This document shows, piece by piece, positions 8,250-27,308 of a stretch of 64,000 nt of DNA. The notes under the pieces were generated by a model. It saw only the letters and a list, made by a program, of their open reading frames with translations, made no database searches and was not told the DNA's origin. The stretch spans positions 186,001-250,000 of IMG/VR virus record IMGVR_UViG_3300027834_000005; one strand, written 5' to 3'. The position numbers and the translations under genes are program-made. Each line of letters begins with the position of its first letter. Position 1 is the first letter of the stretch.

Positions 8250-8258
8250 TTTTTTAAT

Positions 8259-8752: not shown

Positions 8753-9100
8753 ATGGACACAGTTAATATTAATCGTTTAGAACTACTAGAAATCGTTAAA
8801 GCGAATCTAGAAACCCACAAGACAGATATTTTATCTGCTAAAACCGCACGTTTAGCACAGTACAAAGCTGATGTGGCTAAGGCGTTAGATGATCCAGAAG
8901 GATTACGGGAAATAACTGTTCCTAAAGTGCCAGATAACACTACTGAGTATGAGAGTACAGTTCGTAAATTAGAATTATCGGTAGATGACGTGATTGCATT
9001 AGAATCACATGAGTTTGACAACTATGTGATGGATAAATGGCACAGTACGCGTTTGTTAAAAGGTATGTTGAACACCTATAGTGCTTCGGGTATGCTTTAA
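8753..9100 (+). CDS. Hypothetical phage protein
   Basis: ORF from ATG 8753 (MDTVNINRLELL...). Confidence 0.65.
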   Translation: MDTVNINRLELLEIVKANLETHKTDILSAKTARLAQYKADVAKALDDPEGLREITVPKVPDNTTEYESTVRKLELSVDDVIALESHEFDNYVMDKWHSTRLLKGMLNTYSASGML

Positions 9101-9104
9101 TAGC

Positions 9105-9566: not shown

Positions 9567-9572
9567 TTTAAT

Positions 9573-9650
9573 TGCGCGGTAGTGAAGCTTGGTCATCACG
9601 CAAGGCTCATAACCTTGAGATCGGCGGTTCGAATCCGTCCTGCGCTACCA
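9573..9650 (+). tRNA. tRNA-Met(CAT), initiator-like
   Basis: CAAGG CTCATAA CCTTG; 1:72 mismatch; CCA. Confidence 0.85.
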
Positions 9651-11289: not shown

Positions 11290-11410
11290 TTGACAGGGAC
11301 GTGATATAGTGATATAATTCGTCCCATATTAAGAAATACTCATTTTGAGATAAAAACTTCTGAAAATGATAAATAAAAGTATTGACAAAGTGTTTAAAGC
11401 ACTGTATAAT
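11290..11410 (+). promoter_or_regulatory. Promoter stack for tRNA cluster 1 (two sigma70 promoters plus a late TGATAAATA)
   Basis: TTGACA-N17-TATAAT at 11290-11318 and 11382-11410; TGATAAATA ~11367. Confidence 0.8.
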
Positions 11411-11448
11411 ACTCAGTATAAATTAAATGACTAATAAGGTCTAGTAAA

Positions 11449-11607
11449 ATGAAAACAATTATCGCAACTACAATCGCTTCCAGTATGCTCTTATCTGCAT
11501 CACAGCGCCAAGTTGTGTCTGAACAATTGTTATCATCTCAGTCGGTTGAACGCCAACTGGAAAGACAGCCTTACGGGTTAATGAGTATCGAAGAGGATTT
11601 TATCTAA
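11449..11607 (+). CDS. Leader peptide 1 of tRNA-cluster attenuator (52 aa, S/L/Q/R/E-rich)
   Basis: MKTIIATTIASSMLLSASQRQVVSEQLLSSQSVERQLERQPYGLMSIEEDFI*; TAAGGT SD; below ORF-track cutoff. Confidence 0.85.
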   Translation: MKTIIATTIASSMLLSASQRQVVSEQLLSSQSVERQLERQPYGLMSIEEDFI

Positions 11608-11635
11608 GTATAGATTAAAATCACAGAGAATTCAG

Positions 11636-11669
11636 AAACCCGATCTAGGCAACTAAATCGGGTTTTTTT
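11636..11669 (+). terminator. Attenuator terminator 1 (alternative antiterminator 11574-11642)
   Basis: AAACCCGATCTAG GCAA CTAAATCGGGTTTTTTT; upstream CGGGTT (11574-79) is complementary to its 5' arm. Confidence 0.85.
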
Positions 11670-11697
11670 ATGCTCGAAGAAAAAGAAAAGAATTAAA

Positions 11698-11772
11698 GCA
11701 CCATTCGACTAGTGGCTAGGTCAACAGGTTTTCAACCTGCAGAAGGGGGATCGAAACCCCCATGGTGTACCA
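11698..11772 (+). tRNA. tRNA-Glu(TTC)
   Basis: ACAGG TTTTCAA CCTGC, CCA. Confidence 0.9.
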
Positions 11773-11777
11773 ACAAA

Positions 11778-11852
11778 TGGGGTGTGGCCAATAGGATAAG
11801 GCAACGGGCTTTGAACTCGTGATAGTGGGATCGTTACCCACCACCCTAGCCA
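11778..11852 (+). tRNA. tRNA-Gln(TTG)
   Basis: ACGGG CTTTGAA CTCGT, GCCA. Confidence 0.9.
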
Positions 11853-11952
11853 ATAAGGTAATAAAAGGTGAAAGATATGAACATGAATAAAGAGGTAAAT
11901 TTGGGGACGATTGTTCCCATAGCTATCCAGACAGCGACTACGACATTGTAAT

Positions 11953-12026
11953 CGCGGATTAGCTAAGTGGTATAGCCTCGCACTTTGACTGCGATGTCGA
12001 GGGTTCGATTCCCTCATCCGCTGCCA
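11953..12026 (+). tRNA. tRNA-Gln(TTG)
   Basis: TCGCA CTTTGAC TGCGA, GCCA. Confidence 0.9.
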
Positions 12027-12178
12027 CGAAAGAAGTAGAAATAAAAGTTGTAAAGAAGTAGAAAACGTGAGAAAATATAGAAGAACAGAGAAGCGGGAAG
12101 GAAATATAGGGCTGGCCTAAGAATCAGATTTGTGCAGTATTGATTGCCTCTCATTAATAAAATAATGAGGACAATATA

Positions 12179-12427
12179 ATGAAAAGTTTATTAAAGAGAC
12201 ATAGAGTAAGAGCGACATTTTATCACGTAGTAGCGATACTATTTGTTTTAAGTGCAGTATGCGCAGAGTCAGGTATTATAAGTATAACGGCTGGTTTCTG
12301 GATAGGAATAGTATTATTCTTTGCAGATTATATCGCAGAGATGTATGACCCGAATCCTGAGAATCCAGGTCCATGGTTTGAATCGCACTTTCATAGATTT
12401 TATGATGGTGACGAAGATGAAGAATAG
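12179..12427 (+). CDS. Small membrane protein
   Basis: Two hydrophobic segments; GAGG SD. Confidence 0.6.
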   Translation: MKSLLKRHRVRATFYHVVAILFVLSAVCAESGIISITAGFWIGIVLFFADYIAEMYDPNPENPGPWFESHFHRFYDGDEDEE

Positions 12428-12430
12428 AAT

Positions 12431-12507
12431 GCGACGGTGATCCAATTGGTAGAGGTGCTAGGTTCAAGTTCTAGTTGTTGAGGGTTCGACTCCCTCTCGT
12501 CGTACCA
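12431..12507 (+). tRNA. tRNA-Leu(CAA), short variable arm
   Basis: CTAGG TTCAAGT TCTAG, ACCA. Confidence 0.8.
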
Positions 12508-12688
12508 TATTAGGTGAGTATATGAAGAACAGAAACAAATGGCTACGTATACCAGAACATATTGAGAAAGAAAGAGTATACAGAGAGGCCGTAGCTCTAT
12601 TTGATCAGTTAGAAAAGAAGAACGGCGTGCTATCTACATCAGTAGCCACGTTAAGAGATAGATTGAAGAAAAGTTTTAAAGGTTAAAT

Positions 12689-12775
12689 GCGGGTGTGGCG
12701 AAGTTGGTATATGCAGCGGTTTTAGAAACCGTAGATCGGAAGATCGTGAGGGTTCGACTCCCTCCACCCGTACCA
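12689..12775 (+). tRNA. tRNA-Leu(TAG)
   Basis: GCGGT TTTAGAA ACCGT, long variable arm. Confidence 0.95.
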
Positions 12776-12790
12776 TATTGGAGAAAGAAG

Positions 12791-13126
12791 ATGGCACATT
12801 ATAGAAAGTTAGAAGTTGGTGGTATTAATTACCAATTTAATATCGGTAAACGTTATGTCGCCATCAAAGGTCCGAACGGAACAGAGCACGTAGAAAAAAG
12901 TGTTGTTGGGTTTGAAGTGCATGCCAGTGCTGCCGTTACGCCCAAGATGATCGCTGATCATATAAAGGGATGTAAAAAAGATGTCAGTGAGTACTTCCCG
13001 TCGTGCGGATGTGAAGGAGTAGAGAAGACACTAGTGGTTAATCCGTACGAAAGTGAAATTCGTGAAAAAACATATTATAACTATTGGTGTAAAAGTTGTT
13101 ATGAAAGTGTAGCGGATGATATTTAA
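12791..13126 (+). CDS. Hypothetical Cys-rich protein
   Basis: ATG 12791 after GGAG; CGC..CKSC motifs. Confidence 0.6.
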   Translation: MAHYRKLEVGGINYQFNIGKRYVAIKGPNGTEHVEKSVVGFEVHASAAVTPKMIADHIKGCKKDVSEYFPSCGCEGVEKTLVVNPYESEIREKTYYNYWCKSCYESVADDI

Positions 13127-13136
13127 AAGTTTTGAA

Positions 13137-13223
13137 GCCATGGTGGCGAAGCAGGAATATGCACCAGACTTAAAATCTGGCGGTCGAAAGATCATGCGGG
13201 TTCGATTCCCGCCCATGGCACCA
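13137..13223 (+). tRNA. tRNA-Leu(TAA)
   Basis: CCAGA CTTAAAA TCTGG, long variable arm. Confidence 0.95.
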
Positions 13224-13311
13224 AATACGTATAGCTGAGGATATAGCATGTTGTCTTCCAAGGCCTGAAAAGGTAGCGCAGCCAGAAGGTTAGGCATGCT
13301 GAGATTTTAAT

Positions 13312-13382
13312 ACGTCGGGCAGCGGATGCAAGAGAGATTACGAATCTTTCTGTCGGTGGTTCGAATCCACCTCGGCGTACCA
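13312..13382 (+). tRNA. tRNA-Arg(ACG) with reduced D-arm
   Basis: AGAGA TTACGAA TCTTT; intact T-arm and acceptor; D-arm only GCA-GCGGA-TGC. Confidence 0.7.
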
Positions 13383-13542
13383 ATTTTTACGGAGAGTTCC
13401 ATGGGAACAGTTATAGACCTAGAATCTTATAGAACATCAAGAATGAGTAAGATGGAATCTCTCAAATACACGGCAGAAAAAGCCAAAAGGCTAGCCGAAA
13501 GGATTGATAGGAAAATCGAGAAAATGAAGAAGTAAGTTTAAT

Positions 13543-13620
13543 GCACTTGTCGTCTAACTGGAATAGGATACCTGACTTTCAATCAGGGGAATGCGGGATC
13601 GAGGCCCGTCAAGTGTACCA
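13543..13620 (+). tRNA. tRNA-Glu(TTC)
   Basis: CCTGA CTTTCAA TCAGG. Confidence 0.9.
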
Positions 13621-13626
13621 TTTTAT

Positions 13627-13760
13627 GGGACTGGCTGAAGGCAGCTAAGGTAGAGGTTCGATTCCTCTTTTAAGTCTGGACAGACGGAGGTTCGATTCCT
13701 CATTACGTCTACTGGTATACTTGCGAGTGTAGATGGGTTCGACTCCCGACAGTTCCAACA
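13627..13760 (+). ncRNA. tRNA-like RNA with three T-loop hairpins
   Basis: GGGACTG/CAGTTCC closing stem; GAGGTTCGATTCCTC twice and GGGTTCGACTCCC. Confidence 0.6.
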
Positions 13761-13864
13761 TTTTAAGGTAGCAAATACCAAACGCTACCTTGGTGAAAAG
13801 GTTGGCCTAGTAGTAAGAGGTGGTACTCTTGTGAAAAGCTGGCCTTAGTAACCTAAATTTTAAT

Positions 13865-13941
13865 GCGTCCTTGGCCAAATTGGATAAGGCACCGGATTTC
13901 TACTCCGACGATTCCAGATTCGAATTCTGGAGGGCGCACCA
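13865..13941 (+). tRNA. tRNA-Arg(TCT)
   Basis: CCGGA TTTCTAC TCCGA, ACCA. Confidence 0.9.
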
Positions 13942-14122
13942 AACATACTGTTAATGGGAAATACTAGTTTCAACCATTGACAGGCAGGGCTGAACTCGCA
14001 AGGTTCTTTCCTTTACTTGCTTAGGCATCAGACAGCGAATCGTGGATGGGTCTGAAGGGTGGCTACGCGGAGTAGTAGTGAGATAAATGATTTCTAAATT
14101 CTCACGGCAGGTAAAAAACACT

Positions 14123-14212
14123 AGCAGATAATCCATGATGGTGATTGGGTGCGCTTGGAAAGCGTTGCGAGGGCTGATACCCCTTTCGGATCGATACCGA
14201 TGTCTGCTACCA
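14123..14212 (+). tRNA. tRNA-Ser(GGA)
   Basis: GCGC TTGGAAA GCGT, long variable arm. Confidence 0.8.
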
Positions 14213-14220
14213 AATTTAAT

Positions 14221-14295
14221 GCTCCTGTCGTCTAATGGCTAGGATATCGCGTTCTCAGCGCGGGGAAGACGGATCGATACCGTCCAGGAGTACCA
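14221..14295 (+). tRNA. tRNA-Glu(CTC)
   Basis: TCGCG TTCTCAG CGCGG. Confidence 0.9.
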
Positions 14296-14301
14296 ATTTA
14301 T

Positions 14302-14390
14302 AGTAGGTTAATTCGTCGGGGACGGACACGGCTTTGAATACCGTTGGAGGGTTAATAGCCCTTGGGGATCGATACCTCAATCTACTGCCA
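14302..14390 (+). tRNA. tRNA-Ser(TGA)
   Basis: ACGGC TTTGAAT ACCGT, long variable arm, GCCA. Confidence 0.8.
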
Positions 14391-14934: not shown

Positions 14935-15023
14935 GGTAGATAATCCTGACAGGGTCAGGCACTGTTTCGAAAACAGTAGGAGGACTTGCGTGCCTTGGGG
15001 ATCGTTACCTCTATCTACCTCCA
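14935..15023 (+). tRNA. tRNA-Ser(CGA)
   Basis: ACTGT TTCGAAA ACAGT, long variable arm. Confidence 0.85.
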
Positions 15024-15998: not shown

Positions 15999-16955
15999 AT
16001 GGATATTCAATATTTGAAAGGACTTATCCTAGCATTAGAAGAAACGTACAGCACTACTCAAACTGTAGATAGAGATCAATTATGCTATGACGTTGTCATG
16101 TTAGACGCTATGACAAAAGCTAATAGAGGTCTGAAGGATGTTATTAAAAAGTATAGTAGTATGCTTATCGTATTAGAGAATCGTGAAAGAACAAAAACGT
16201 ACAAAAATAGACTAGAGCAATTATATGATGGTGTTGGCGTGTACGAAGCCAGTGTTATTACGGCGAGAGCTAAAGTGTTATGTGAAGAATATAAGCAGGA
16301 TAGTGAATTAGGTTTGTTAGCCACAGATAAGACTCTAGACGTGTCTATGCGAGACATAGTGCTTACTACCCAAGAAAAAATAATGAGAAATTTAGAACCT
16401 AAAGATTTCTTAGACGACACTGATATTGCGATAATTACTGACCCAGCTGTAGCCTCAAAAAATGAGAGCTTTAAGCAGAAGTCAGAAGAGCATGCTGCAG
16501 ACGTTAATAGTCAAGTGTGTAAAAACGCACAAGTATATTCTGAGAAGTTAGCCAGTGATATGTCGGTACAAGGTATTGACGTGGTAATTGAGGAAAGTGA
16601 ATTCAGTGTTATCAATCCAAGATACGACAGAGATATGTCTTCTCTACGTGGCAAAATAACTACCGCATCGGACGAAGATAGGATGGATCTAGAGAACGAA
16701 AGACAGCGCTATATGAATAGTACAGATAGAAGCTTGACTCTTAACGAGATATATAATAAGCTTCTTAACTTACGAGAAATACTTATTAGTCCTTCTGATT
16801 TTTCAGGGGTAGATGTCGATATGAAAGCAATTGACGCAATGAGGATTACATTTAGTAGTGGAGTTATGACTCCAGAAGAAACGGTTAGTATGAACGAAGA
16901 AGCATTAGAGATATTGGTGCGATACGGGATTTACGCTGATCGGTATGCCACTTAA
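15999..16955 (+). CDS. Late hypothetical protein
   Basis: 318 aa ORF preceded by TATAAATA (T4 late consensus) at ~15963. Confidence 0.65.
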   Translation: MDIQYLKGLILALEETYSTTQTVDRDQLCYDVVMLDAMTKANRGLKDVIKKYSSMLIVLENRERTKTYKNRLEQLYDGVGVYEASVITARAKVLCEEYKQDSELGLLATDKTLDVSMRDIVLTTQEKIMRNLEPKDFLDDTDIAIITDPAVASKNESFKQKSEEHAADVNSQVCKNAQVYSEKLASDMSVQGIDVVIEESEFSVINPRYDRDMSSLRGKITTASDEDRMDLENERQRYMNSTDRSLTLNEIYNKLLNLREILISPSDFSGVDVDMKAIDAMRITFSSGVMTPEETVSMNEEALEILVRYGIYADRYAT

Positions 16956-16973: not shown

Positions 16974-17097
16974 TTGACAACTACTACATAACGTTGTATA
17001 ATAGTCGGCATCAAATGAACGAAAACTTGTTTTAGACAAAAAAAGTTCAAAAATGATAAATAAAAGTATTGACAACGATTGTAATACGTTGTATAAT
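16974..17097 (+). promoter_or_regulatory. Promoter stack for tRNA cluster 2 (two sigma70 promoters plus a late TGATAAATA)
   Basis: TTGACA-N17-TATAAT at 16974-17002 and 17069-17097; AAAATGATAAATAAAAGTATTGACAA is shared with the cluster 1 stack. Confidence 0.8.
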
Positions 17098-17140
17098 ACT
17101 CAGCATAACTTAACTAGATAATATTTCAAGGTGAAATAAC

Positions 17141-17317
17141 ATGAAAACATTGACTGCAAACATCAATACAACAACAAAGCATATTGCTATTAATAGCACG
17201 GCTGCGTGGTGTGTGATTGCGCCTATGTTTAGTGTGATAGCGGATGATAGTAATTTTAATGGCTATCCGAAGCATCAGAATCGGGTTAGAATGAAAGGTG
17301 AGACGAGAGGAATGTAA
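17141..17317 (+). CDS. Leader peptide 2 of tRNA-cluster attenuator (58 aa)
   Basis: MKTLTANINTTTKHIAINSTAAWCVIAPMFSVIADDSNFNGYPKHQNRVRMKGETRGM*; AAGGTG SD. Confidence 0.85.
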   Translation: MKTLTANINTTTKHIAINSTAAWCVIAPMFSVIADDSNFNGYPKHQNRVRMKGETRGM

Positions 17318-17341
17318 ATTCCAAAACTCATAAAGAATTCG

Positions 17342-17374
17342 AAACCCGACCTAGGAAACTACGTCGGGTTTTTT
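17342..17374 (+). terminator. Attenuator terminator 2 (alternative antiterminator 17281-17349)
   Basis: AAACCCGACCTAG GAAA CTACGTCGGGTTTTTT; upstream TCGGGTT (17281-87) is complementary to its 5' arm. Confidence 0.85.
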
Positions 17375-17496
17375 CGTTTCAGGGGTTCGTAAAATCCCAG
17401 ACTACTTTACTCCAGCAGTAAAGCGTTATTTGAAAATTAGATTAGTAAATTGGAAAGCGGGGCATACCATGCCTCGCTATATAAACAAAAGAATTT

Positions 17497-17570
17497 GGGG
17501 CCATAGTATAATGGGATTATGCCTGCCTTGCACGTAGATGATCGGGGTTCGACTCCCCGTGGCTCCACCA
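17497..17570 (+). tRNA. tRNA-Ala(TGC)
   Basis: GGGGCCA acceptor with G3:U70, CTTGCAC loop. Confidence 0.9.
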
Positions 17571-17577
17571 AATTTGT

Positions 17578-17653
17578 GGTCATGTAGCTCAGAGGCAGAG
17601 CACTCCCTTCATACGGGACGAGGTCGGGATCTCAGAATTCCCCATGACTACCA
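17578..17653 (+). tRNA. tRNA-Met(CAT) (elongator, or lysidine Ile2)
   Basis: CTCCC TTCATAC GGGAC, ACCA. Confidence 0.8.
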
Positions 17654-17659
17654 AATTTA

Positions 17660-17690
17660 GCCTCCATAGTGTAGCGGTAGCACAGCTTTA
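17660..17690 (+). pseudogene. 5' half of a tRNA truncated at the HNH cassette
   Basis: GCCTCCA TA GTGT AGCGGTA GCAC; no matching 3' half nearby. Confidence 0.55.
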
Positions 17691-17729
17691 ATAGTGTATG
17701 AGTAGGAAAATGATAAATACTTATAAACT

Positions 17730-18230
17730 ATGGTGAGCAATATGAAAAAAGAGTATTTGAAAAATCTAGTGGGTGAGGGTAAAACTCTGAAAGAGTTGTC
17801 GGAGGCCACTGGTAAAGGACAGACTACGGTAGTCTATTGGATGAAGAAGTACGATCTTAAGACTTCAAATGCGGAAAAAGGCCATGCCACTACTGCTTTT
17901 GTATGTTTATGTGGGGAAGATGATGAGGCTAAATTCTATAAGTCTACTCCGTCTATGTGTAAGCAGTGTCACGGCGAATATTGTGTTGAAAGATATGCCA
18001 AAGTAAAGAAGAAGGCGGTGGAATATAAGGGTGGTTCTTGTGAGAATTGCGGCTATGATAGACATAATGGCTGTTTAGAATTTCATCACCTTGACCCTAC
18101 GCAGAAAGATCCTAATTTTGCTTACTCTAGGGGTTGGGCGTGGGAACGTTTAGCTAAGGAACTAGATAAGTGCGTAATGTTATGCGCAAATTGCCATCGT
18201 GAAGTTCACGGCGGCGTGTTAAAACTTTAA
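17730..18230 (+). mobile_element. Free-standing HNH homing endonuclease (HTH + Zn + HNH)
   Basis: YKGGSCENCGY..LEFHHLDP..ELDKCVMLCANCHREVH; own TGATAAATA promoter. Confidence 0.85.
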
Positions 18231-18232
18231 AT

Positions 18233-18324
18233 GCTTCGATAGCTCAATTGGTAGAGCGACGGATTTATATCCCGTGCAGTAGATAACTGGTCGGTTGGGG
18301 GTTCGAATCCCCCTCGAAGTACCA
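18233..18324 (+). tRNA. tRNA-Ile(TAT) with extended variable arm
   Basis: GCTTCGA/TCGAAGT acceptor; ACGGA TTTATAT CCCGT. Confidence 0.7.
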
Positions 18325-18328
18325 ATTT

Positions 18329-18400
18329 ACGCCAATGGATTTATACCTCGTAACCACAGATAATGGGCTGTCGCAGGTTCGAATCCTGCTAGGTGTACCA
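18329..18400 (+). pseudogene. D-armless degenerate tRNA-Ile(TAT)-like copy
   Basis: GATTTATACC, same AGATAA extra arm, intact T-arm and ACCA, no D-arm. Confidence 0.5.
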
Positions 18401-18405
18401 TTTTA

Positions 18406-18482
18406 GCTCTTGAAACATTTATATGGATGATGTCCCGTTTTGTAATCGGGGGAACGCGGATCGTTACCGTGCTGGAGCACCA
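18406..18482 (+). tRNA. tRNA-Thr(TGT), atypical
   Basis: CCCGT TTTGTAA TCGGG; GATCGTTA T-loop. Confidence 0.7.
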
Positions 18483-18633
18483 AATAGAAAAAGTTGTAAA
18501 AAAAAGATTGACTCCTTATGAAATAGATGATATAATGATAAGGCGCTTACAACAACAGTTAGACATCTGCATTAGGTCTGTATCCCTAATCGAAGAAGCA
18601 GCAGTGAAGGTCTGAAGATACAGTGATTTTTTA

Positions 18634-18721
18634 GGTAGATTGGCAGAGTGGTGAATGCAGCGGGTTGCTAACTCGTGATCCTTAACGGGGTCCATAGGTT
18701 CGAATCCTATATCTACCGCCA
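18634..18721 (+). tRNA. tRNA-Ser(GCT)
   Basis: GCGGG TTGCTAA CTCGT, long variable arm. Confidence 0.95.
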
Positions 18722-18727
18722 TGTTTT

Positions 18728-18802
18728 ACACGGGTAGCTCAGAGGCAGAGCGGTGGTGTTACATACCATAGGTCGAGATTTCGAAATTCTCTCCGTGTAC
18801 CA
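18728..18802 (+). tRNA. tRNA-Val(TAC)
   Basis: GTGGT GTTACAT ACCAT. Confidence 0.9.
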
Positions 18803-18809
18803 ATTTTTT

Positions 18810-18884
18810 GCACTTGTAGCTGAGATGGATTAGCGACGGATTGAAGTCCCGTATAGAAAGGATCGTTACCTTTCAAGTGCACCA
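18810..18884 (+). tRNA. tRNA-Phe(GAA)
   Basis: ACGGA TTGAAGT CCCGT. Confidence 0.85.
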
Positions 18885-19024
18885 AATTTCGCTAGTACTG
18901 GGTTCTGCCCAAGGATCGCAACCTTGGCTTAGTATTAGCGCAATATTTTGACACTACTGTCCCATGGGGGATATCCTCGAAAGAGGCAGCATGCTCTAAG
19001 TGTGCGGTGTCAAAAACTAATCAG

Positions 19025-19076
19025 CTGGCCTGATGAGTCCTAACAGGGACGAAACGAGAGTAAATCTCGTCGCCAG
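19025..19076 (+). ncRNA. Type I hammerhead ribozyme; predicted cleavage after C19071 at tRNA-Tyr +1
   Basis: CTGGC-CTGATGA-GTCC..GGAC-GAAA-CGAGA..TCTCG-TC-GCCAG: complete core and three stems. Confidence 0.95.
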
Positions 19077-19154
19077 AGTAGCAGCGTAATTGGTAGCGCC
19101 CCGCACTGTAAATGCGCATTCCCGTTGTTGGTTCGAATCCAACCTTTGGCACCA
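19072..19154 (+). tRNA. tRNA-Tyr(GTA)
   Basis: GCCAGAG/CTTTGGC acceptor; CCGCA CTGTAAA TGCGC. Confidence 0.85.
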
Positions 19155-19174
19155 AATTAAAAAAAACTAATCAG

Positions 19175-19225
19175 TCCGCCTGATGAGTCTTATTAGAGAC
19201 GAAACATCTTACGAGATGTCGCGGG
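19175..19225 (+). ncRNA. Type I hammerhead ribozyme; predicted cleavage after C19220 at tRNA-Tyr +1
   Basis: TCCGC-CTGATGA-GTCT..AGAC-GAAA-CATCT TACG AGATG-TC-GCGGG. Confidence 0.95.
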
Positions 19226-19303
19226 AGACGTACCACTGGAAGGTATATCGGGCTGTAACCCCGACGCGAAAGCATATAGGTTCGAGTCCTATCTCCCGTA
19301 CCA
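19221..19303 (+). tRNA. tRNA-Tyr(GTA)
   Basis: GCGGGAG/CTCCCGT acceptor; TCGGG CTGTAAC CCCGA. Confidence 0.85.
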
Positions 19304-19345
19304 AATTACATAGGTAAGTAATAGCCTGACATATTACAAAGTTTT

Positions 19346-19421
19346 GGACCCTTAGCTCAATCGGGAGAGCACCGAGCCGATAACTCGGAGGTAGTTGGAT
19401 CGAAACCAACAGGGTCTACCA
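19346..19421 (+). tRNA. tRNA-Ile(GAT)
   Basis: CCGAG CCGATAA CTCGG. Confidence 0.9.
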
Positions 19422-19428
19422 ATTTAAT

Positions 19429-19505
19429 TCCGTGGTGGAGCAGAGAGGTAATGCGCTTGGCTGTTAACCAAGATTTCGCTGGTTCGATCCCAGCCCACGG
19501 AGCCA
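19429..19505 (+). tRNA. tRNA-Asn(GTT)
   Basis: CTTGG CTGTTAA CCAAG. Confidence 0.9.
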
Positions 19506-19546
19506 ACATGAGGAATGTTCACCTCTATAAAAACGAGTGAAGTTTA

Positions 19547-19621
19547 GGTGCTATAGCTCAGAGGCAGAGCAAACCGTTGTCTGCGGTAAGGTCGGGATTT
19601 CGAAATTCCCTAGCATCGCCA
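19547..19621 (+). tRNA. tRNA-Asp(GTC)
   Basis: ACCG TTGTCTG CGGT, GCCA. Confidence 0.8.
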
Positions 19622-19627
19622 ATTTTT

Positions 19628-19703
19628 ACCAGCGTAGCTCAATCGGGAGAGCGGGTCCCTGTCAAGGATCAGGTAGCGAGATCGAAACTCGTCGTTGGTG
19701 CCA
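19628..19703 (+). tRNA. tRNA-Asp(GTC)
   Basis: GGTCC CTGTCAA GGATC, GCCA. Confidence 0.9.
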
Positions 19704-19709
19704 ATTTAT

Positions 19710-19801
19710 GTATCAGAGCAAGTATGGACGTCCATACACTGTGCTGTCTCAAGTCGTCAAGTCATGGGATCGGGTGGTTCAATACCACTGGTGATGCGCC
19801 A
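19710..19801 (+). ncRNA. tRNA-like RNA / degenerate tRNA
   Basis: GTATCA/TGATGC stem, T-arm GTGG TTCAATA CCAC, GCCA end, non-canonical middle. Confidence 0.4.
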
Positions 19802-19807
19802 ATTTAT

Positions 19808-19886
19808 CGGGATATAGCTCAGTCTGGTGTAGAGCGCATGCTTTGGAAGCTTGAGGCCGTAGGTTCGAATCCTACTATCCCGACCA
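19808..19886 (+). tRNA. tRNA-Pro(TGG)
   Basis: CGGGATA acceptor, TTTGGAA loop. Confidence 0.9.
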
Positions 19887-19892
19887 ATTTAA

Positions 19893-19971
19893 CGGAATGT
19901 AACTCAGTCTGGTTTAGAGTGACGGTCTTGGATACCGTTGGCCACTGGTTCGAATCCAGTCATTCCGACCA
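19893..19971 (+). tRNA. tRNA-Pro(TGG)
   Basis: ACGGT CTTGGAT ACCGT. Confidence 0.9.
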
Positions 19972-20269
19972 ATTAGTTGTTGACGTCAACATTAAAAAGC
20001 GTTAGAATACGTCCCTTAGAGGATATTAATATGGATTGTAAGCAGATATGTCATAACATCAGATATAACCACATATATGAGGATGAAGATGGTAATCCCG
20101 TGGATGGTTATGCAAAAGGACATAGGATCGTATCTAGTGAGCCGTATTGTACTGTTTACCAAAACGAGAAAATGAAGCGTAACGGCGATGAAGTTGTTCC
20201 GTTAGCAAAATGTAAAGCCGATGATTATGCTGAGACAATCGTGTTTTATTATGACGGTAAGATGATGGT

Positions 20270-22021
20270 ATGAGATTTGAAGATTTAGCCAGACAGCCAA
20301 TGCGCCACGGTGATGAAAGCGTAAATTATATGTTAGTATATCATGGAGATGAAACATGGGTTCCTAGATTTAAAAGTGGTGCTATAATGACCATTGAGGC
20401 AAATCACGTTGATTATTGGAGTTCTAGTGTAACTCTCTTTAAGTATGAATGTAACGGCGTACCTGCCGATATAAGATGTGCGTCTACGGAAGATCGGTTT
20501 GTAGTTACGACTAAAATGAAAAAAGATATAGTAAGTAGCGTATACGTAAAGTGTTTTTACCCGTTAGATGTAGGCAGTCCGTTTTATAGTGATGAAGATT
20601 TATTTGAAGCCAAGTTATCTGGCGACTATGAAGCGATAAGAAAGACTTTGAGAAAAGAATTTAATGCTTGGAAAAAGGTGAACTAAGTGAAATTTGAAGA
20701 CTTAGCTAATATTAAAATGTGTGACGTCGATACTAATGTGCAGTACCTTTGTGCATACAACTCTAGTTACACTATGTCAAGTAAGCCATGTACATTAAAT
20801 CCCATGGCCATAGATGATTTTTGGTCTCAATATGTATTTGAAAAGGCGCATAAAAATGGCAGTAACTACTCACTTGGCCAAAACGGAAGATTAGTAATAA
20901 CTACTAAGATGAAAACTGAAAACCTTAATGAGCATGGTTATACCTTTTTAAATGGACACTATGTAACGTGTTTTTATCCAATAGTTGCTGATAGTCCTTA
21001 CTATAGTAATGAAGAATTATTCGAAGCTAAATTAACAGATAACTTTGTGCCGTTAATTAAGAAATTACGTAAAGCTTTTTATCATTGGAAAAAGGTGAAC
21101 TAAGTGAAATTTGAAGTATTAGCAAAGACGGAAATGGTACGTGCCGATGAGAGTGTTGATTATATCCTCGTGTACCATTCAAGTGATAAATGGTATCCGA
21201 CCACATATAAAAGAGGGACGATAGTAAAACTATCAACTACTACTGATATATATGCATCGCCATATACGTTTACTCACGTAGTTGAGCCAGACATTATCCA
21301 TACTATATCTGGTCGTAGCCACTCAGATAGATTGATAGTGACTACTAAGATGAAGCGTAGAGTTAGAAATAATATTGGGTGGAGGACATTAGATGAAGAA
21401 TCGGTTAAATGTTTTTATCCTTTAGTTGCTGATAGTCCTTATTATACTGATGAAGATTTGTTTGCCGCTAAGATCAGTAATGATTATGATGTAGTGTTTA
21501 AGAAGTTAAGAAAAGCGTTCAATGATTGGAAAAAAATTAATTGACAACGACCTTAAACTCTTATATTATATTATCTCTTTCAAGAGGTGCACGTTATGGA
21601 CTTTGCAGAATTAGCGGATATAAGAATCAGAAACGCTGACACTATATTGAAGTATATGGTAGTGTATGATTCAGTATGGCAAGAAGGCCGAGACAAGAAT
21701 ATGCCTGATGGTGACGTCGGCACAATCACTAGAACTATAGCCAAGCATACCAACTCGGAAATGTTGACTATTAGTGCCAAGGGATTGAAACATAGCATGC
21801 TTATACCCTCCGTCGTAGACTCATTGGTCGTAACGGCCAAGATTAAAAAAGAACGTAGGGGTGAATATCTGGATGTATCTGCCAAGTGCATATATCCATT
21901 AGTAGAAGGAAGTCCTTACTACGAGGATGAAGAGCTATTTGAGGCCAAGTTGTCCGGTGACTATCGTAAGTTGTACAAGAAGTTAAGAAAAGCATTTAAT
22001 GCTTGGAAGAAAGAAAACTAA
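20270..22021 (+). repeat. Tandem array of four paralogous ~140 aa genes (20270, 20687, 21104, 21587)
   Basis: Shared MxFEDLA start, VTTKMK, KCFYPL..SPYYxDEELFEAKLSGDY..LRKAFNxWKK; variable middles. Confidence 0.85.
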
Positions 22022-22348
22022 TATGATTAATGTATACAGTAGAAGGCATATTAGATCTGACGCAACGCCACATGAAGTTATTGATGCGTACGTTAGTAAG
22101 ATTACCGGATACAAGTGTCTTCTGCTTAAACCACGTGATGGACCTAAATGTGGTATGTACCTTGAGACTCTGTATCAGTTTAACAAGAAAGAAGATATAG
22201 ATGGTATATATGATGCTATAGTAGAACAAGATGAAGAAGCGTTGATGTTCTATGAGTTATCAACGTAGTATAGAATTCTAACGCTGACGTTGTGTTGAGT
22301 GTTACATAGAAAAATTTGTCCTCTATGTGTAAAAGGAAAAGGTTCCAA

Positions 22349-22424
22349 GGGTCTCGACGCATATTGGTACGCGGACGGATTGTGATTCCGTTGGAACTCG
22401 GTTCGAAACCGAGGTGACCCTCCA
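22349..22424 (+). tRNA. tRNA-His(GTG)
   Basis: ACGGA TTGTGAT TCCGT; A-1:U73 instead of G-1:C73. Confidence 0.85.
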
Positions 22425-22440
22425 AATTTAAAGAGTATAG

Positions 22441-22827
22441 GTGATTAAAATGTTTTATGGAGAATTCGATACGTGGGATAATGTATTGTCCCAGTTTGGC
22501 GTAGAAAAGTCGGAAGTTTCCAATGCGGTGCCTATATTTGCAGCATATGATATAGACGGGTATGAAGGAACTGCTTCGGTTGTTTATGTTGAAGATGGAA
22601 AGTTCTGGTTAGTTGACGGATCACATTGTTCTTGCTACGGCTTAGAAGATCAGTGGGAACCTGAAGAGACTCCTTATGAAGTATTGGAGCACTTGGCAGA
22701 AAAAGGAAACTACATGTTCTCTGTGTACAAAAAAGAGTTCATGGCGACGATTAATTTTATTAAGGAAAGCGGTTTCGACAACGTTGACCCTAAAGAATTA
22801 GAATTTGTATTAAAATTATCATTGTGA
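22441..22827 (+). CDS. Hypothetical phage protein
   Basis: 128 aa ORF with GSHCSCYGLEDQWEPE motif. Confidence 0.65.
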   Translation: MIKMFYGEFDTWDNVLSQFGVEKSEVSNAVPIFAAYDIDGYEGTASVVYVEDGKFWLVDGSHCSCYGLEDQWEPEETPYEVLEHLAEKGNYMFSVYKKEFMATINFIKESGFDNVDPKELEFVLKLSL

Positions 22828-22931
22828 TAAAAAATTAAAAATAGGAAGGTAAGATATGAAATCAGGCAAACTTATCGTCTTATAGGATACCCTAATGTGT
22901 TGGTGATCCCGTAAGACGTAAAACAACTTAC

Positions 22932-23007
22932 GGGGTGGTAGCTCAGCGGCCAGAGCAGTTGGCTTTTAACCAATTCGTCGAGGGTTCGAATCCCTCTCGC
23001 CCCACCA
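22932..23007 (+). tRNA. tRNA-Lys(TTT)
   Basis: GTTGG CTTTTAA CCAAT. Confidence 0.95.
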
Positions 23008-23018
23008 AACACACATTA

Positions 23019-23094
23019 GGGATATTAGCTCATCAGGTAGAGCAACTGGCTTTTAACCAGTAGGTGCTCGGTTCGAGACCGAGATATCCCACCA
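23019..23094 (+). tRNA. tRNA-Lys(TTT)
   Basis: ACTGG CTTTTAA CCAGT. Confidence 0.95.
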
Positions 23095-23095
23095 A

Positions 23096-23172
23096 GGGAC
23101 GTTAGCTCACGTTGGTAGAGCAGGGAGCTTTTAACTCTCTGGTAGTCGGATCGTCACCGACACGTCCCACCA
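23096..23172 (+). tRNA. tRNA-Lys(TTT)
   Basis: GGGAG CTTTTAA CTCTC. Confidence 0.9.
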
Positions 23173-23655
23173 AATTTTATTTGACAGCGTCATTAATTCA
23201 TGAGATTATATAGACTCTAAAGATTGGGAGAAGATCATGAACGGATCGTACTGGTAAAATTGTATGAGAAAGACTCAAGCAAATCCATGGGCAGCGTCTG
23301 CGTACAGAGAGCGTGTGGAGAACGGTAGACCTACTGGTGTCATTGTTAAGGATTTCGTAGCTTATCCTAATTGTGAAACCTTTGACTGGAAACATATTGA
23401 GGAGATCACCAAGTGAACACTTTAGAAAACGTGATAGCATATCAAGAGAAAGTCCGCGATACGTTCGGTATAGAAAGCAATTGCGACGTAGGGCAATCGT
23501 ATAAAGAGTTGGGTGAGAAATACGCATATGTATTAGACGTCACCGAAGAAGAAAAGTTACAAGTAAACCATGCCGTATTTGTAGACGGAGTGGTAATAGA
23601 ATTTAAAGCACTTAACCCAAGTATCTGGGAAGAAGTGAATATTTAAAAAGTTTAC

Positions 23656-23729
23656 AGCGCGTTGACAGAGAGGCTATGTGGTCGGCTGCAACCCTTCATA
23701 CGCCGGTTCGAATCCGGCACGCGCTTCCA
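23656..23729 (+). tRNA. tRNA-Cys(GCA)
   Basis: CTGCAAC loop, U73, weak anticodon stem. Confidence 0.8.
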
Positions 23730-23737
23730 ATTTTAAT

Positions 23738-23816
23738 TGCGGTTTTAGTTAGGTCAGGTGACCTTCCGAGGCTCATAACCTCTGGGTGATGCGTTCGATA
23801 CGCGACTCCGCTACCA
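23738..23816 (+). tRNA. tRNA-Met(CAT), degenerate initiator-like
   Basis: GAGG CTCATAA CCTC; mismatched acceptor. Confidence 0.55.
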
Positions 23817-23821
23817 TTTTT

Positions 23822-23893
23822 ACCTCTGGGACATAGGATGTCAGACGGATTCCAAACCCGTCTTACTGGGATCGTTACCTAGCAGGGGTGCCA
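23822..23893 (+). tRNA. tRNA-Trp(CCA)
   Basis: ACGGA TTCCAAA CCCGT; short D-arm; GCCA. Confidence 0.8.
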
Positions 23894-25150
23894 AACACTA
23901 AGGATATACCCATGAACGTTTTAACTATGACAGCAGTTACTAGTCGTTCGTTCGGCACGCAAGACGGGAACCTTATCGAAGAAAAAGAAACGTACCACAT
24001 ACATCCTTACACTGAAAGAAAAGGATTTGATCAGATGTACGGTATACTCGATGAAGACTACGAACATGTAGTCACTGTGTTGTTTCGATCATTATGCGTT
24101 ATATTCGGCGAAGAAGAAATATTTACTAAAGTGCTACTCGGTGAATTGGAACCTAATGTAAATCATGCATAATTCATATAAAGCCGCTAGAGAAGTAGGC
24201 ATGAACTCATTCACGTGCGTATGCACTAAGCCTACTAGATTCTTTTCTTTGAGTCCGTTAAGGGTAATAAAAAAAGATTGTATTTATTTCATTAAGCCTA
24301 GTATTCCTTTTCAGATTGACCTACCAGAGCCGGTAGTGTACGCAGTAGGCGTATTAGAAAAGATACATGGTGACCCAGACAGAAAGTTTTTTAAAGTGTT
24401 ATGTGAAGTGGATTACCAAGGTTTATTAAAAGTGTTTGATGAAGAAGATATATTTCAGCAAGTACTACTCGGTAACGTAGTAGCGGAGTGAGATATGATT
24501 ACAAAAAGAAACGGTTTTTTCATTAAGCGTTGCGCTGATTGTAGTGAAGAGTTATCGCCTACTGAGTATTTTTTCTGTCATGACTGTGAAGAGTGGCATC
24601 GACGGGCGGAAGAGATGGCTATGGAAGCTGACTTCGGCGATGAAGATGATACGTAAGTAGACTTTAATATAAATGTCTGGTATAATTAATGTGTAAAGTG
24701 ATAATCGGTAGGTAAAAAGTATGTGTGATGTTTCTAGTACTATTGAGAGCACTGTTATTCAGTGTGGCGATATTTCATTACAGGACATGGTTGCGATTGT
24801 CGTGGCTGGTTATGTGAATGAAAAAGAAGAAACTTATAGAGGCAGTAATCGCGCCGACGAATATAAAAAAGACGAGTTCTATAGATGCTTATCTAGTCTA
24901 AGTGCCACAATCAGTGACGGGCCAGACTTCGGTGGGCTGGATCGAGTTGTGCATTATCGCGCAGTAGTTGATATTGGACCTCGATTCAGAAGCTTCTTAA
25001 AAATATGTGAAGACATGAACGTGATTGTGACTGTTGATCCACTACGTATGTTAGATCTTACAGTATTGGATCGTAAGATACAGAAGTTCAATGAGTGGGC
25101 AGGCAAGGCAATCCTGACACAAGTACAAGAAGACTATAAGTAAGAACAAC

Positions 25151-25226
25151 GCTGTTGTAGCTCCAAAGGTAGAGCGCGTCTTTGGTAAAGACGAGGTTGC
25201 TGGTTCAAGCCCAGCCTTCAGCACCA
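25151..25226 (+). tRNA. tRNA-Thr(GGT)
   Basis: CGTCT TTGGTAA AGACG. Confidence 0.9.
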
Positions 25227-25230
25227 AATT

Positions 25231-25304
25231 GCGGTATTAGCTCAGAGGCAGAGCGTTGGGCTTCCACCCCATGTGCAGGATTTCGAAATTCCTATACCGC
25301 TCCA
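25231..25304 (+). tRNA. tRNA-Gly(TCC)
   Basis: TGGG CTTCCAC CCCA, TCCA. Confidence 0.85.
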
Positions 25305-25467
25305 AAATTACATTGGCATACTCTTAGCGTTAAAACTGGGCGGACAAATATACGCTTTGCCTAAAGAGACGATATGTAATATACTGTGCCTCGGACGGTT
25401 CCTAGAGGATAAAACACAAGGGTTATTAAGCGTAATTGCAGTCCCTAATTGGAGCCACCATTTTTAT

Positions 25468-25544
25468 GCGGTATTAGCTCACGTTGGTAGAGCACCGGCT
25501 TGCCAAGTCGGAGGTAGTGGGATCGTCACCCACATACCGCTCCA
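25468..25544 (+). tRNA. tRNA-Gly(GCC)
   Basis: CCGGC TTGCCAA GTCGG. Confidence 0.95.
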
Positions 25545-25968: not shown

Positions 25969-27308
25969 ATTATTAAAATCCGGTAGGTATCAACATGATC
26001 ATAGAATGGAAACTTGAAGGTGGTGCAGTGGCACCCATGATGCACTATTCGTTGAATAGAGTGTACGATATGTTTTATCCTGTCGGCGAAAAGTTCACTA
26101 TCGAAAAGATAGGTGATGACCTATATAAGGTTACTGATCCAGATGGCAGATACGGCAAGTGGATGTTATGCCACCTAACCTCATTCTTCTCTAATGAAGA
26201 TTTATTCTTAGCTACGCTAGAAGGATTTGAATCATGACACGTGAAGACCTATTAGTCCTACTAAGAGAAGAGCTGAGTATAGATATAACTATGCCGCCAT
26301 CGAGTGGGTTCTGTTCTCCCAATATACAAATAGAGTTGCGCCTAGGTGAAGATGTAATATCCGAAGTTCAGCTTTCCGGTGATGAAATAAGAGATGCTTT
26401 GGGAGATTACTAATGTCACTAGCTGATGATTGGTTCGAAAAGGCCATGGACAGTAGTTTTGATGCGTTTAATGCTACCGCAGTAAATACTATAGGTGAGA
26501 TATTGAGTGGCGTAGATTATGTCATCAAAGCGCACTATAAGTTTAGGTTTCCGGCTGGAGTCACACCGGAATGTATAAGGTATCGAGTGTCTAGGATAGG
26601 TCCAGTGTCACATCATGTTAATAAGGGAAACCAGATTTATAATATTTGTGATATAGACTATACAGACCTGTGTTATTATTTCGGCGAAGAAGAAATATTC
26701 ACGCAGACACTGAAAGGGAACGTTATTCCCTTTTCAGAATAAACCAAATTACTAATTGACATTTTTCAAATAATGACATACTATTCCTTTTCCAACAGAG
26801 GACATCAACATGTTAGATCTAATAGACCGCCACGCAGTTTTCTTCGCAGTGTTATATTTTTCAGTTAGGGATTATTTCTCAGCAGGTAGTTCCTTGGAAG
26901 TATACATGTGGATGTTTGCTATATGTGGGTCAGTATTCTATGCTGTCACTCTTCTTCTTACGTATGTGTCTGCCAACATGGACGACGTCGAAGTGGAAGC
27001 TGAAAATAAAGACTTCGCTCTCGAATATATAACCAAGATCTTTCTAAGGTCATCTTACCAAGTAAAAGAATTCCTATGGGCGTATACCGCCGTTATGTGT
27101 GGGGCTATATTTGTCTTAATCCATAATGAGTACGTCTTCCTTCCTATTATATTGGCCATGGTGTATTCGTTCGGGGTATCAGTTAAGCTTTACTTATGTA
27201 AGGTAGTGGTACATCTAGTGACGACTGGCGTCATCAAGGTAGAATCCGATAATCAAGAAACCTAATTGACTTTAGGTTTAATTTCTCATATAATTAAGTT
27301 CAATTTAC

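Follow-up and report, generated by a model that had tools for sequence, protein, structure and literature searches.

Leader-peptide attenuators control amino acid operons such as those preceded by thrL (with Thr and Ile codons), ilvL/ivbL (with Leu, Val and Ile codons), trpL, hisL, leuL and pheL. In these systems, a short translated leader follows the promoter, its regulatory codons are cognate to what the operon supplies, and the position of the ribosome chooses between mutually exclusive antiterminator and terminator hairpins. The pheST (pheM leader) attenuator of the E. coli chromosome applies this mechanism to a component of the translation machinery: it controls an aminoacyl-tRNA synthetase and senses a single amino acid through the availability of charged tRNA as read by the ribosome. 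T-box riboswitches also link tRNA status to transcription read-through by competition between an antiterminator and a terminator, but they bind uncharged tRNA directly, have no ORF, are specific for one tRNA and control synthetase or amino acid genes, mainly in Firmicutes. Accessory tRNA arrays can themselves be regulated. For example, the bacterial trn tRNA-array operon of Anabaena is kept off and induced by translational stress (PMC8421152), but control is by a ribbon-helix-helix repressor, TrcR, at the promoter (PMC10272220), and the words leader, attenuator and terminator do not occur in the main text of the 2021 paper. Phage tRNAs that act as counter-defence against anticodon nucleases (PMC10264068; PARIS preprint 10.1101/2024.01.02.573894) provide a physiological setting in which sensing the loss of particular host tRNAs would pay off. 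Judging by a term search of the first paper and the title and abstract of the second, these studies concern the tRNAs themselves; the first has no occurrence of promoter or terminator and no small-ORF control of expression.

Here we describe a locus of a giant marine phage in which tRNA genes follow a predicted attenuator. The sequence analyzed (the window) is a stretch of 64,000 nucleotides from IMG/VR virus record IMGVR_UViG_3300027834_000005, and the two modules and their tRNA arrays are on the + strand. In contrast to the amino acid operon attenuators, the genes downstream are tRNA genes rather than biosynthetic enzymes, the element is carried by a phage, and its leader samples up to 16 amino acid classes (19 tRNA species), mostly with single codons instead of runs of codons for 1-3 amino acids. 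No description of such a system was found in full-text literature searches. No T-box or any other Rfam family matches 11400-11670 or 17100-17375, even at E-values up to 5.

The leader ORF (bp 17141-17317) is 58 codons in length, starts with MKT and is preceded by a Shine-Dalgarno sequence, AAGGTG (bp 17128-17133), 8 nt upstream of the ATG, which lies about 36 nt after the predicted transcription start site. It has also been called by gene callers in public data (P0002). Upstream is a tandem pair of sigma-70-type promoters that each match TTGACA-17-TATAAT at 12 of 12 positions (bp 16974-17002 and 17069-17097). The -35 of the proximal promoter lies within a 26-nt block (bp 17050-17075) that occurs exactly twice in the window, the other copy being at bp 11363 in a second tandem pair of 12/12 promoters (bp 11290-11318 and 11382-11410). 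In a natural variant of this module, L011, the ORF is kept and the block and proximal promoter are identical, while the distal promoter stretch is not conserved and the Shine-Dalgarno sequence is AAGGCG.

The tRNA genes downstream of the leader are as listed in the original prediction. The proximal part of this array (bp 17497-19971) encodes Ala, Met, an HNH ORF (bp 17730-18230), Ile(tat), a possible Thr(tgt), Ser(gct), Val, Phe, two Tyr, Ile(gat), Asn, two Asp and two Pro tRNAs. The distal part (bp 22349-25544) encodes His, three Lys, Cys, Met, Trp, Thr(ggt), Gly(tcc) and Gly(gcc) tRNAs interleaved with small ORFs. Most of these were found using ARAGORN with default settings. Met(cat) at bp 17578 was identified by Rfam, while Tyr at bp 19072, Thr(tgt) at bp 18406 and Trp(cca) at bp 23822 appear only at relaxed ARAGORN thresholds, although inspection of the Trp gene by eye showed a 7-bp acceptor stem, a CCA anticodon and a 3' GCCA. 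No strong terminator hit lies between bp 17375 and 25544. However, the extent of the operon is inferred. Promoter-like sites at bp 18508 (11 of 12), 19980, 21541 and 23181 (10-11 of 12) could drive the distal tRNAs independently, and the His, Lys, Cys, Trp and Gly codons of the leader have cognate tRNAs only in this distal part.

Codons 5-45 of the leader (bp 17153-17275) contain no Leu, Gln, Glu, Arg or TCN-Ser codons and include all 16 other classes, which are those of the downstream array; Ser is present only as AGC or AGT and a single ATA is present. Over codons 2-47, 96% of codons are readable by downstream tRNAs and 19 of 19 downstream tRNA species have a cognate codon. The original prediction assumed that the excluded classes make up about 30% of codons and estimated the probability of such a run at 1e-6 to 1e-7. 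In 14,091 codons from 75 ORFs of the window, these classes make up 24.9%, giving p = 8e-6 for a fixed stretch of 41 codons and 3e-5 for any run of 41 or more in a 57-codon ORF. The earlier estimate is therefore too optimistic, but the result remains far beyond chance; the longest such run in the real ORFs is 34. The exclusion is not absolute across the ORF: codon 4 is Leu (TTG) and codons 46-58 contain Gln (codon 46), three Arg and Glu, and from codon 48 on these overlap the antiterminator strand and hairpin.

A companion module lies upstream. Its leader ORF (bp 11449-11607, 52 codons) is rich in Leu, Ser(TCN), Gln, Arg and Glu at codons 14-40, and it precedes a tRNA array (bp 11698-14390) encoding three Glu, two Gln, three Leu and Arg(tct) tRNAs as well as, at relaxed threshold only, Arg(acg), Ser(gga) and Ser(tga). 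In the region upstream of CGGGTT (bp 11574-11579 in this leader), a boundary set by the structure, 24 of 40 codons in leader 1 belong to the Leu/Gln/Glu/Arg/TCN-Ser class compared to 2 of 46 in leader 2 (Fisher 1e-8; whole ORFs, Fisher 2e-6). Nine of 10 tRNA species downstream of leader 1 have a cognate codon, and Ser is split by codon box exactly as the Ser tRNAs are split between the arrays. The proposal that the two leaders mirror complementary tRNA sets is thus supported, but the complementarity is asymmetric, as leader 1 is only about 60% made of its own classes, with 40% of its sensor codons (including three Val) belonging to the other class.

The leader 2 ORF runs through TCGGGTT (bp 17281-17287, codons 47-49), which can pair with the 5' arm of a strong intrinsic terminator (bp 17341-17374; -17.6 kcal/mol) consisting of a 10-bp stem plus an inner 3-bp stem, followed by T6. 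When the terminator 3' arm is absent, bp 17281-17287 are predicted to pair with bp 17343-17349 (-22.9 kcal/mol), enclosing a hairpin (hairpin P, bp 17289-17340) with an apical GGAAT/ATTCC stem and the TAA stop codon (bp 17315-17317) in its loop. This helix is only 7 bp in the window, although it stacks on hairpin P. An antiterminator helix that excludes the terminator forms in both leaders and in two natural variants. In L011, the sensor is retained apart from Asn38 to Asp, which stays within the class, while hairpin P is rewritten with indels and the C-terminal tail is frameshifted, yet a hairpin still folds inside the same helix. In a further natural variant, L012, Ser16 is changed to Leu by two nucleotide changes, which also stays within the class. 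No convincing pause or protector (1:2) hairpin was found: the only candidate, pairing of the 5' UTR with GGGTTA in the minimum-energy folds, is disrupted by both substitutions in L012. The element may therefore be on by default when untranslated, although this feature belongs to the trp type and is not shared by all attenuators.

The terminator of leader 1 (bp 11635-11669) is near-identical to that of leader 2, with a compensatory C-G / T-A change. In a scan of the + strand from 6.5 to 27 kb for hairpins followed by T-runs (RNAfold energy -9 kcal/mol or lower), these two terminators were the two strongest hits and lay between the strongest promoters and the tRNAs; the five weaker hits, read by eye, were taken to be tRNA 3' ends or sequence inside ORFs. 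Only 29 nt separate terminator 1 from tRNA-Glu, which leaves no room for a separate promoter. The spacer following terminator 2 (bp 17375-17496) contains two small hairpins as read by eye, and no promoter-like site starts within it; L011 carries a 21-nt insertion here.

To determine if this arrangement is found elsewhere, viral contigs were searched for the antiterminator/terminator core. Of 99 distinct hits, 47 have a tRNA array starting within 200 nt downstream, compared to 1 of 120 in bacterial genomes and 5 of 122 for viral terminators of the same core taken without requiring the upstream strand. Forty-six of these 47 loci have an ORF through CGGGTT. Because these are metagenomic contigs that are partly related to one another, the number of independent cases is nearer 10-20 than 47. 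Leader amino acids match their own array (0.645) more than permuted arrays (0.408 +/- 0.032; 0 of 200,000 permutations, p below 5e-6), and this is also the case when the window is left out (0.626 compared to 0.395). At the codon level, the match is 0.594 compared to 0.367, and the coverage of tRNA species is 0.915 compared to 0.62. The antiterminator helix covaries, with duplex energies of -17.4 kcal/mol for own partners and -13.4 +/- 0.4 kcal/mol for swapped partners (p 2e-5). Sixteen out-of-sample modules with other terminator cores repeat the match (0.424 compared to 0.151, p 1e-5), and in 11 of 12 of those selected as clear, 6-10 nt of the terminator 5' arm pair with an upstream strand around a hairpin.

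Based on these results, and in the absence of any RNA data for this phage, we consider the locus to be best explained as a ribosome-mediated transcription attenuator that gates a phage tRNA operon and senses the supply of the very tRNAs that it controls (probability approximately 0.85). In this model, host RNA polymerase starts at the tandem promoters and a ribosome loads on the leader. If every sensor codon is decoded promptly, the ribosome would follow the polymerase through TCGGGTT to the stop codon inside hairpin P, within the loop that the antiterminator helix would have to close, so that the terminator forms and transcription ends at bp 17374. If any one of the roughly 19 tRNA species is scarce (because of host tRNA cleavage or degradation, codon-usage mismatch or heavy demand), the ribosome would stall upstream, TCGGGTT would pair with AACCCGA around hairpin P, and the polymerase would read into the array. 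New phage tRNAs would then restore leader translation and shut the operon down again in a negative feedback loop. Leader 1 is predicted to do the same for Leu, Gln, Glu, Arg and TCN-Ser tRNAs, such that the two modules split the code between them. The direction of regulation, the ribosome geometry and the physiological trigger are inferred, and because sensor codons occur mostly once rather than in runs as in trp or his, sensitivity to a partial shortage is uncertain.

Three other explanations are unlikely. The first is that the terminator is constitutively leaky or depends on a phage antitermination protein or RNA, with leader translation mattering only indirectly (for example, for RNA stability). 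Phage antitermination systems are common, the antiterminator helix in the window is short, and no expression data exclude a temporal switch. However, this does not explain why the codons of each leader track its own array, why the ORF stop sits at a fixed distance inside the antiterminator loop or why an upstream strand covaries with each terminator arm. The second, slightly less likely, is opposite polarity, in which efficient leader translation promotes read-through (for example, by the ribosome melting the terminator or blocking Rho) so that tRNA genes are expressed only when translation is healthy. Although the direction of regulation has been inferred rather than measured, over the 45 family loci in which the ORF stop lies past the start of CGGGTT, the stop codon falls 24-44 nt upstream of the terminator 5' arm (median 29; about 28 and 32 in the window) and 13-44 nt after CGGGTT. 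This is beyond the downstream reach of a ribosome but inside the antiterminator loop, a geometry that matches the classical attenuators in which completed translation favours termination. The least likely is that the promoter, ORF and terminator form a self-contained early gene for a small peptide, with the tRNAs transcribed from other, possibly phage-specific, promoters and the codon pattern a by-product of peptide function: leader 1 begins like a signal peptide by our reading, gene callers treat the leader 2 ORF as an ordinary gene and promoter-like sites exist inside array 2, but this is argued against by the 29-nt gap before tRNA-Glu, by the recurrence of the codon-to-tRNA match across the family, by the split of Ser codons by box (a property of codons and not of the peptide), by the frameshifted and thus unconserved C-terminal tail in L011 and by the reading of CGGGTT in all three frames across the family.

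The region analyzed here is part of a 347-kb viral contig from a marine metagenome (IMGVR_UViG_3300027834_000005), and the same phage is also represented by a 410-kb JGI contig. It has no close cultured relative: blastn of both leader regions and tblastn of a 720-aa protein against a cultured-phage collection found nothing, and the A1-like protein was similar only to proteins of distant marine gammaproteobacterial phages. Searches with single neighboring proteins returned only the source contig, and a metagenome scan with the promoter block (see below) found the phage itself plus three chance hits. On the + strand between 7 and 26 kb there are about 45 tRNA genes in three groups. Six perfect TTGACA-17-TATAAT promoters occur in this stretch, all on the + strand and arranged as three tandem pairs. 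The first pair (6624, 6709) drives a GOLLD-like RNA that matches the Rfam GOLLD model over its full length (7205-7709; 122 bits, E-value: 3e-32, below the gathering score of 150) and has a tRNA-Leu(cag) gene (7278-7350) embedded in it, and we therefore rejected the possibility of a third leader in front of the first tRNA group (7278-9650). Each of the other two pairs (11290/11382 and 16974/17069) is followed by a short ORF (leader 1 and leader 2, respectively), a strong hairpin with a T-run and then tRNA genes. These two units share an identical 26-nt block, the MKT start, a CGGGTT element late in the ORF and near-identical terminators in which one C-G / T-A difference is compensatory.

All of the coordinates and sequence features in the original prediction, which proposed that leader 2 is an attenuator whose codons mirror the downstream tRNA set and complement those of a first leader, were found to be correct. 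Codons 5-45 of the leader 2 ORF (17141-17317) contain no Leu, Gln, Glu, Arg or TCN-Ser codon and contain at least one codon of each of the 16 remaining classes. The downstream array (17497-25544) holds tRNAs for exactly those 16 classes and none for the excluded ones, while the upstream array (11698-14390) holds Glu, Gln, Leu and Arg tRNAs, plus Arg(acg), Ser(gga) and Ser(tga) at a relaxed threshold. Among 14,091 codons from 75 ORFs of the window, the excluded classes make up 24.9% of codons, such that a fixed 41-codon stretch without them has a p-value of 8e-6 and a run of 41 or more anywhere in a 57-codon ORF has a p-value of 3e-5. The longest such run in the real ORFs is 34. Given 41 codons of the non-excluded class, coverage of all 16 classes has a p-value of 0.058. 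The original estimate of 1e-6 to 1e-7 was therefore too small by one to two orders of magnitude, but the observation stands. Tests that do not depend on the choice of a stretch give the same picture: Fisher's test gives 2e-6 for the whole ORFs of leader 1 against leader 2 and 1e-8 for the regions upstream of CGGGTT (24 of 40 codons against 2 of 46), a boundary that is set by the RNA structure. At the codon level, 19 of 19 tRNA species of the downstream array and 9 of 10 of the upstream array have a cognate codon in their own leader, and Ser is split by codon box exactly as the Ser tRNAs are split between the arrays.

Several other elements lie in or near these arrays. A piece resembling the 5' half of a tRNA (17660-17700) is followed by an HNH endonuclease ORF (17730-18230; PHROG E-value: 4e-30), which looks like a mobile endonuclease inserted in the tRNA array. 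Hammerhead ribozyme cores (CUGAUGAG...CGAAAC...GUC) lie directly 5' of both tRNA-Tyr genes (19024-19077 and 19174-19226). Stem I is formed with the first bases of the tRNA, so self-cleavage after GUC would create the mature tRNA 5' end without RNase P, although the Rfam Hammerhead_1 scores (20.8 and 16.7 bits) are below the gathering score. The tRNA-like elements at 18327-18400, 13625-13709 and 14935-15023 have good T arms but poor D arms or acceptor stems and are reported by ARAGORN only at relaxed thresholds, so it is unclear whether they are functional. Four tandem paralogues of about 140 aa (20270-22021) share a C-terminal motif of the form EE[DE]LF..KL, and further small ORFs that appear to have a related tail (23888-24491, 25995-26742) are interleaved with the tRNAs. 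A profile of this paralogous family found relatives only on short metagenomic contigs (loci L014-L018), where the ORFs again sit among tRNAs of the classes found downstream of leader 2 (Pro, His, Met, Cys, Gly, Trp, Ile, Ser-gct) and no leader was within reach. None of the family members listed with precomputed Pfam domains has a hit.

Both leader transcripts fold more stably than shuffled sequences (z -3.4 and -3.8). The terminators are stable (-17.6 and -15.8 kcal/mol) and are the two strongest hits in a hairpin-plus-T-run scan of the + strand over 6.5-27 kb; upon inspection, the five weaker hits were interpreted as tRNA 3' ends or sequence inside ORFs. When the terminator 3' arm is left out, as it is during transcription, the minimum-energy fold pairs (T)CGGGTT inside the ORF with AACCCG(A) of the terminator 5' arm, and this helix stacks on an intervening hairpin (hairpin P) that holds the stop codon (-22.9 and -21.6 kcal/mol). 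The leader 1 terminator ends 29 nt before tRNA-Glu, so that tRNA can only be made by reading through the terminator.

Marine-sediment sequencing runs contain relatives that are 90-95% identical, and two contigs carrying natural variants were recovered through protein clusters. In the first of these (L011, a variant of leader 2), the promoter block, the sensor stretch and the terminator are identical except for Asn38 to Asp, which stays within the class. Hairpin P is rewritten with indels and the peptide tail is frameshifted, yet the region still folds as a hairpin inside the same antiterminator helix. This pattern fits an RNA constraint on the 3' part and a codon constraint on the 5' part rather than a conserved protein. 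In the second (L012, a variant of leader 1), Ser16 to Leu requires two nucleotide changes and also stays within the class. A long-range pairing of the 5' UTR with GGGTTA, seen in the minimum-energy folds, was considered as a protector helix but was rejected because L012 breaks it. The 318-aa ORF just upstream of leader 2 (15999-16955) has no homologue anywhere except itself and is absent from the related strains in sediment metagenomes, whose leader 2 has a different upstream neighbor.

To determine if the element occurs elsewhere, viral contigs were searched for CGGGTT, 40-70 nt, AACCCG, 10-18 nt, CGGGTTTTT. This search gave 114 hits and 99 distinct sequences. In 47 of the 99, a same-strand tRNA array starts within 200 nt (median 26 nt), and in 46 of those 47 an ATG ORF runs through CGGGTT. 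The geometry is tight: over the 45 loci where the ORF stop lies past the start of CGGGTT, the stop lies 13-44 nt after CGGGTT, 24-44 nt before the terminator arm and 51-72 nt before the terminator end, with leaders 1 and 2 in the middle of these ranges. CGGGTT is read in all three frames across the family, so it is an RNA signal and not a peptide signal. Of the 45 loci, 39 have an upstream TAnnTTTG motif that appears to be of the Bacteroidota promoter type, and one locus has a ribonucleotide reductase closest to that of uncultured huge phages of 460-635 kb. In contrast, the same pattern in bacterial and archaeal genomes gave 1 of 120 hits with a tRNA downstream. Similarly, of 122 viral terminators with the same core taken without requiring the upstream strand, only 5 precede tRNAs; one of the five has CGGGTT upstream and three of the other four have, as judged by eye, a CGGGTG-type strand, while none of the other 117 has an upstream CGGGTT. 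Searches of cultured phages with two family leaders (from loci L126 and L028) using blastn and tblastn found no match, and no cultured model carrying the element was identified.

The leaders of this family spell their own arrays. For example, a leader reading ..TYYQPKQTQGGKP.. precedes Pro, Gln, Tyr, Thr, Gly and Lys tRNAs, ..LVALLWVDDAEE.. precedes Asp, Glu, Val, Leu, Ala and Trp, and ..NLNINLTLNVLCLRR.. precedes Arg, Leu, Asn, Val, Cys and Thr. One representative was taken from each of 18 leader groups that have at least four tRNA classes downstream, and arrays were permuted among leaders. The fraction of sensor residues whose amino acid is in their own array was 0.645, compared to 0.408 +/- 0.032 following permutation (reached in 0 of 200,000 permutations), and without leaders 1 and 2 these values were 0.626 and 0.395 (0 of 200,000). 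The codon-level match was 0.594 against 0.367 (p 5e-5; 0 of 20,000), and the fraction of downstream tRNA species with a cognate codon in the leader was 0.915 against 0.62 (p 5e-5; 0 of 20,000). Furthermore, the antiterminator strand pairs better with its own terminator region than with those of other loci (-17.4 against -13.4 +/- 0.4 kcal/mol, p 2e-5).

As an out-of-sample test, every start of a tRNA array or sub-array was listed in the retrieved loci. Of 221 starts, 67 have an intrinsic terminator within 130 nt upstream, and 18 of these have terminator sequences unrelated to the search pattern. For the 16 of these with a short ORF, the match of leader to own array is 0.424 against 0.151 +/- 0.036 permuted (p 1e-5). 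For example, ..IAIIGGGAGAG.. precedes Ile, Gly, Ala, Ala and ..IQPVPQQHPQMP.. precedes Pro, His, Gln. A different short ORF type (MKKPS.VTSDRAF..) with a terminator precedes Glu tRNAs in two viral loci, L110 (about 3783) and L076 (about 9559), and does not match its array; it may be another kind of leader or unrelated. The 12 modules whose leaders looked clearly matched were selected for folding, and in 11 of the 12, 6-10 nt of the terminator 5' arm pair with an upstream strand around a hairpin before the 3' arm exists. Based on these results, the design appears to be general and modular, with one leader per sub-array.

The anatomy of the element is that of classical ribosome-mediated attenuation. 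We predict that a ribosome decoding the sensor without delay reaches the stop codon, which lies inside the loop that the antiterminator helix must close, such that the helix is prevented and the terminator forms. A ribosome stalled on any sensor codon would instead leave CGGGTT free to capture the terminator 5' arm, and the polymerase would continue into the tRNA genes. Because the sensed codons are those read by the regulated tRNAs, the loop would be a negative feedback on tRNA supply, with possible triggers including cleavage or degradation of host tRNAs during infection, codon-usage mismatch or high late demand (the context is discussed in PMC10264068). There are no expression data, and the direction of regulation, the steric argument and the trigger are inferred. 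The extent of the unit to 25544 is likewise inferred, on the basis that no strong terminator hit lies between 17375 and 25544 and that the tRNAs for the His, Lys, Cys, Trp and Gly codons of leader 2 are found only in the distal part of its array. There are further weak points: sensor codons mostly occur once each rather than in runs, the antiterminator helix in the window is only 7 bp, no protector hairpin was found, leader 1 is only 60% made of its own classes and there are promoter-like sites inside the downstream array. Nevertheless, the proposed interpretation is supported, and we estimate the probability of the attenuator explanation at roughly 0.85.

The closest mechanistic relatives are probably the multivalent thr and ilv attenuators and the pheST leader. 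T-boxes share the logic of reading tRNA status but work without an ORF, and none was detected here; no Rfam family covers the element. The closest functional analogue is the Anabaena trn tRNA array, which is induced by translational stress but is controlled by the repressor TrcR, with no mention of a leader or attenuator (PMC8421152, PMC10272220). Full-text literature searches found no paper describing leader-peptide control of phage tRNA genes. While the kind of mechanism is known, the target (tRNA genes), the setting (phages) and the far wider sensor appear to be new. It is likely, though less certain than attenuation itself, that phages carry a widespread, modular homeostat for tRNA supply, in which each tRNA sub-array is preceded by its own leader peptide that spells the amino acids of that sub-array and gates it by attenuation. 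In this reading, the phage studied here shows the extreme form: two near-identical modules divide the whole genetic code, and leader 2 monitors 16 amino-acid classes (19 tRNA species) in 41 codons, compared to the one to three amino acids typical of classic attenuators. The design appears in phages with putative Bacteroidota-type promoters and, in this phage, with sigma-70-type promoters.

Why phages carry tRNAs, and how they use them, has been debated for some 50 years, with proposals including codon compensation, replacement of degraded host tRNAs and escape from anticodon nucleases (PMC10264068). A built-in sensor that turns each tRNA array on when the ribosome lacks exactly those tRNAs would show that phages treat tRNA supply as a regulated quantity, and would extend leader-peptide attenuation from amino-acid metabolism to tRNA genes and from 1-3 to 16 amino acids. 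It would also provide practical handles, as the codons of a leader predict which tRNAs belong to one transcription unit and the leaders could serve as compact reporters for depletion of specific tRNAs, for instance by defence nucleases. With its consensus sigma-70 promoters and Shine-Dalgarno site, the element in the window is directly amenable to study in E. coli.

Further along the window, a phage-encoded tmRNA with the tag peptide ANEELYAQAA (43770-44138) was identified that matches both the beta-type and the permuted tmRNA models. A ribosome-rescue RNA next to stall-sensing leaders may be functionally connected to them. The window also encodes a nicotinamide phosphoribosyltransferase (32828-34495; PHROG 448, E-value: 2e-149), an NAD salvage gene.
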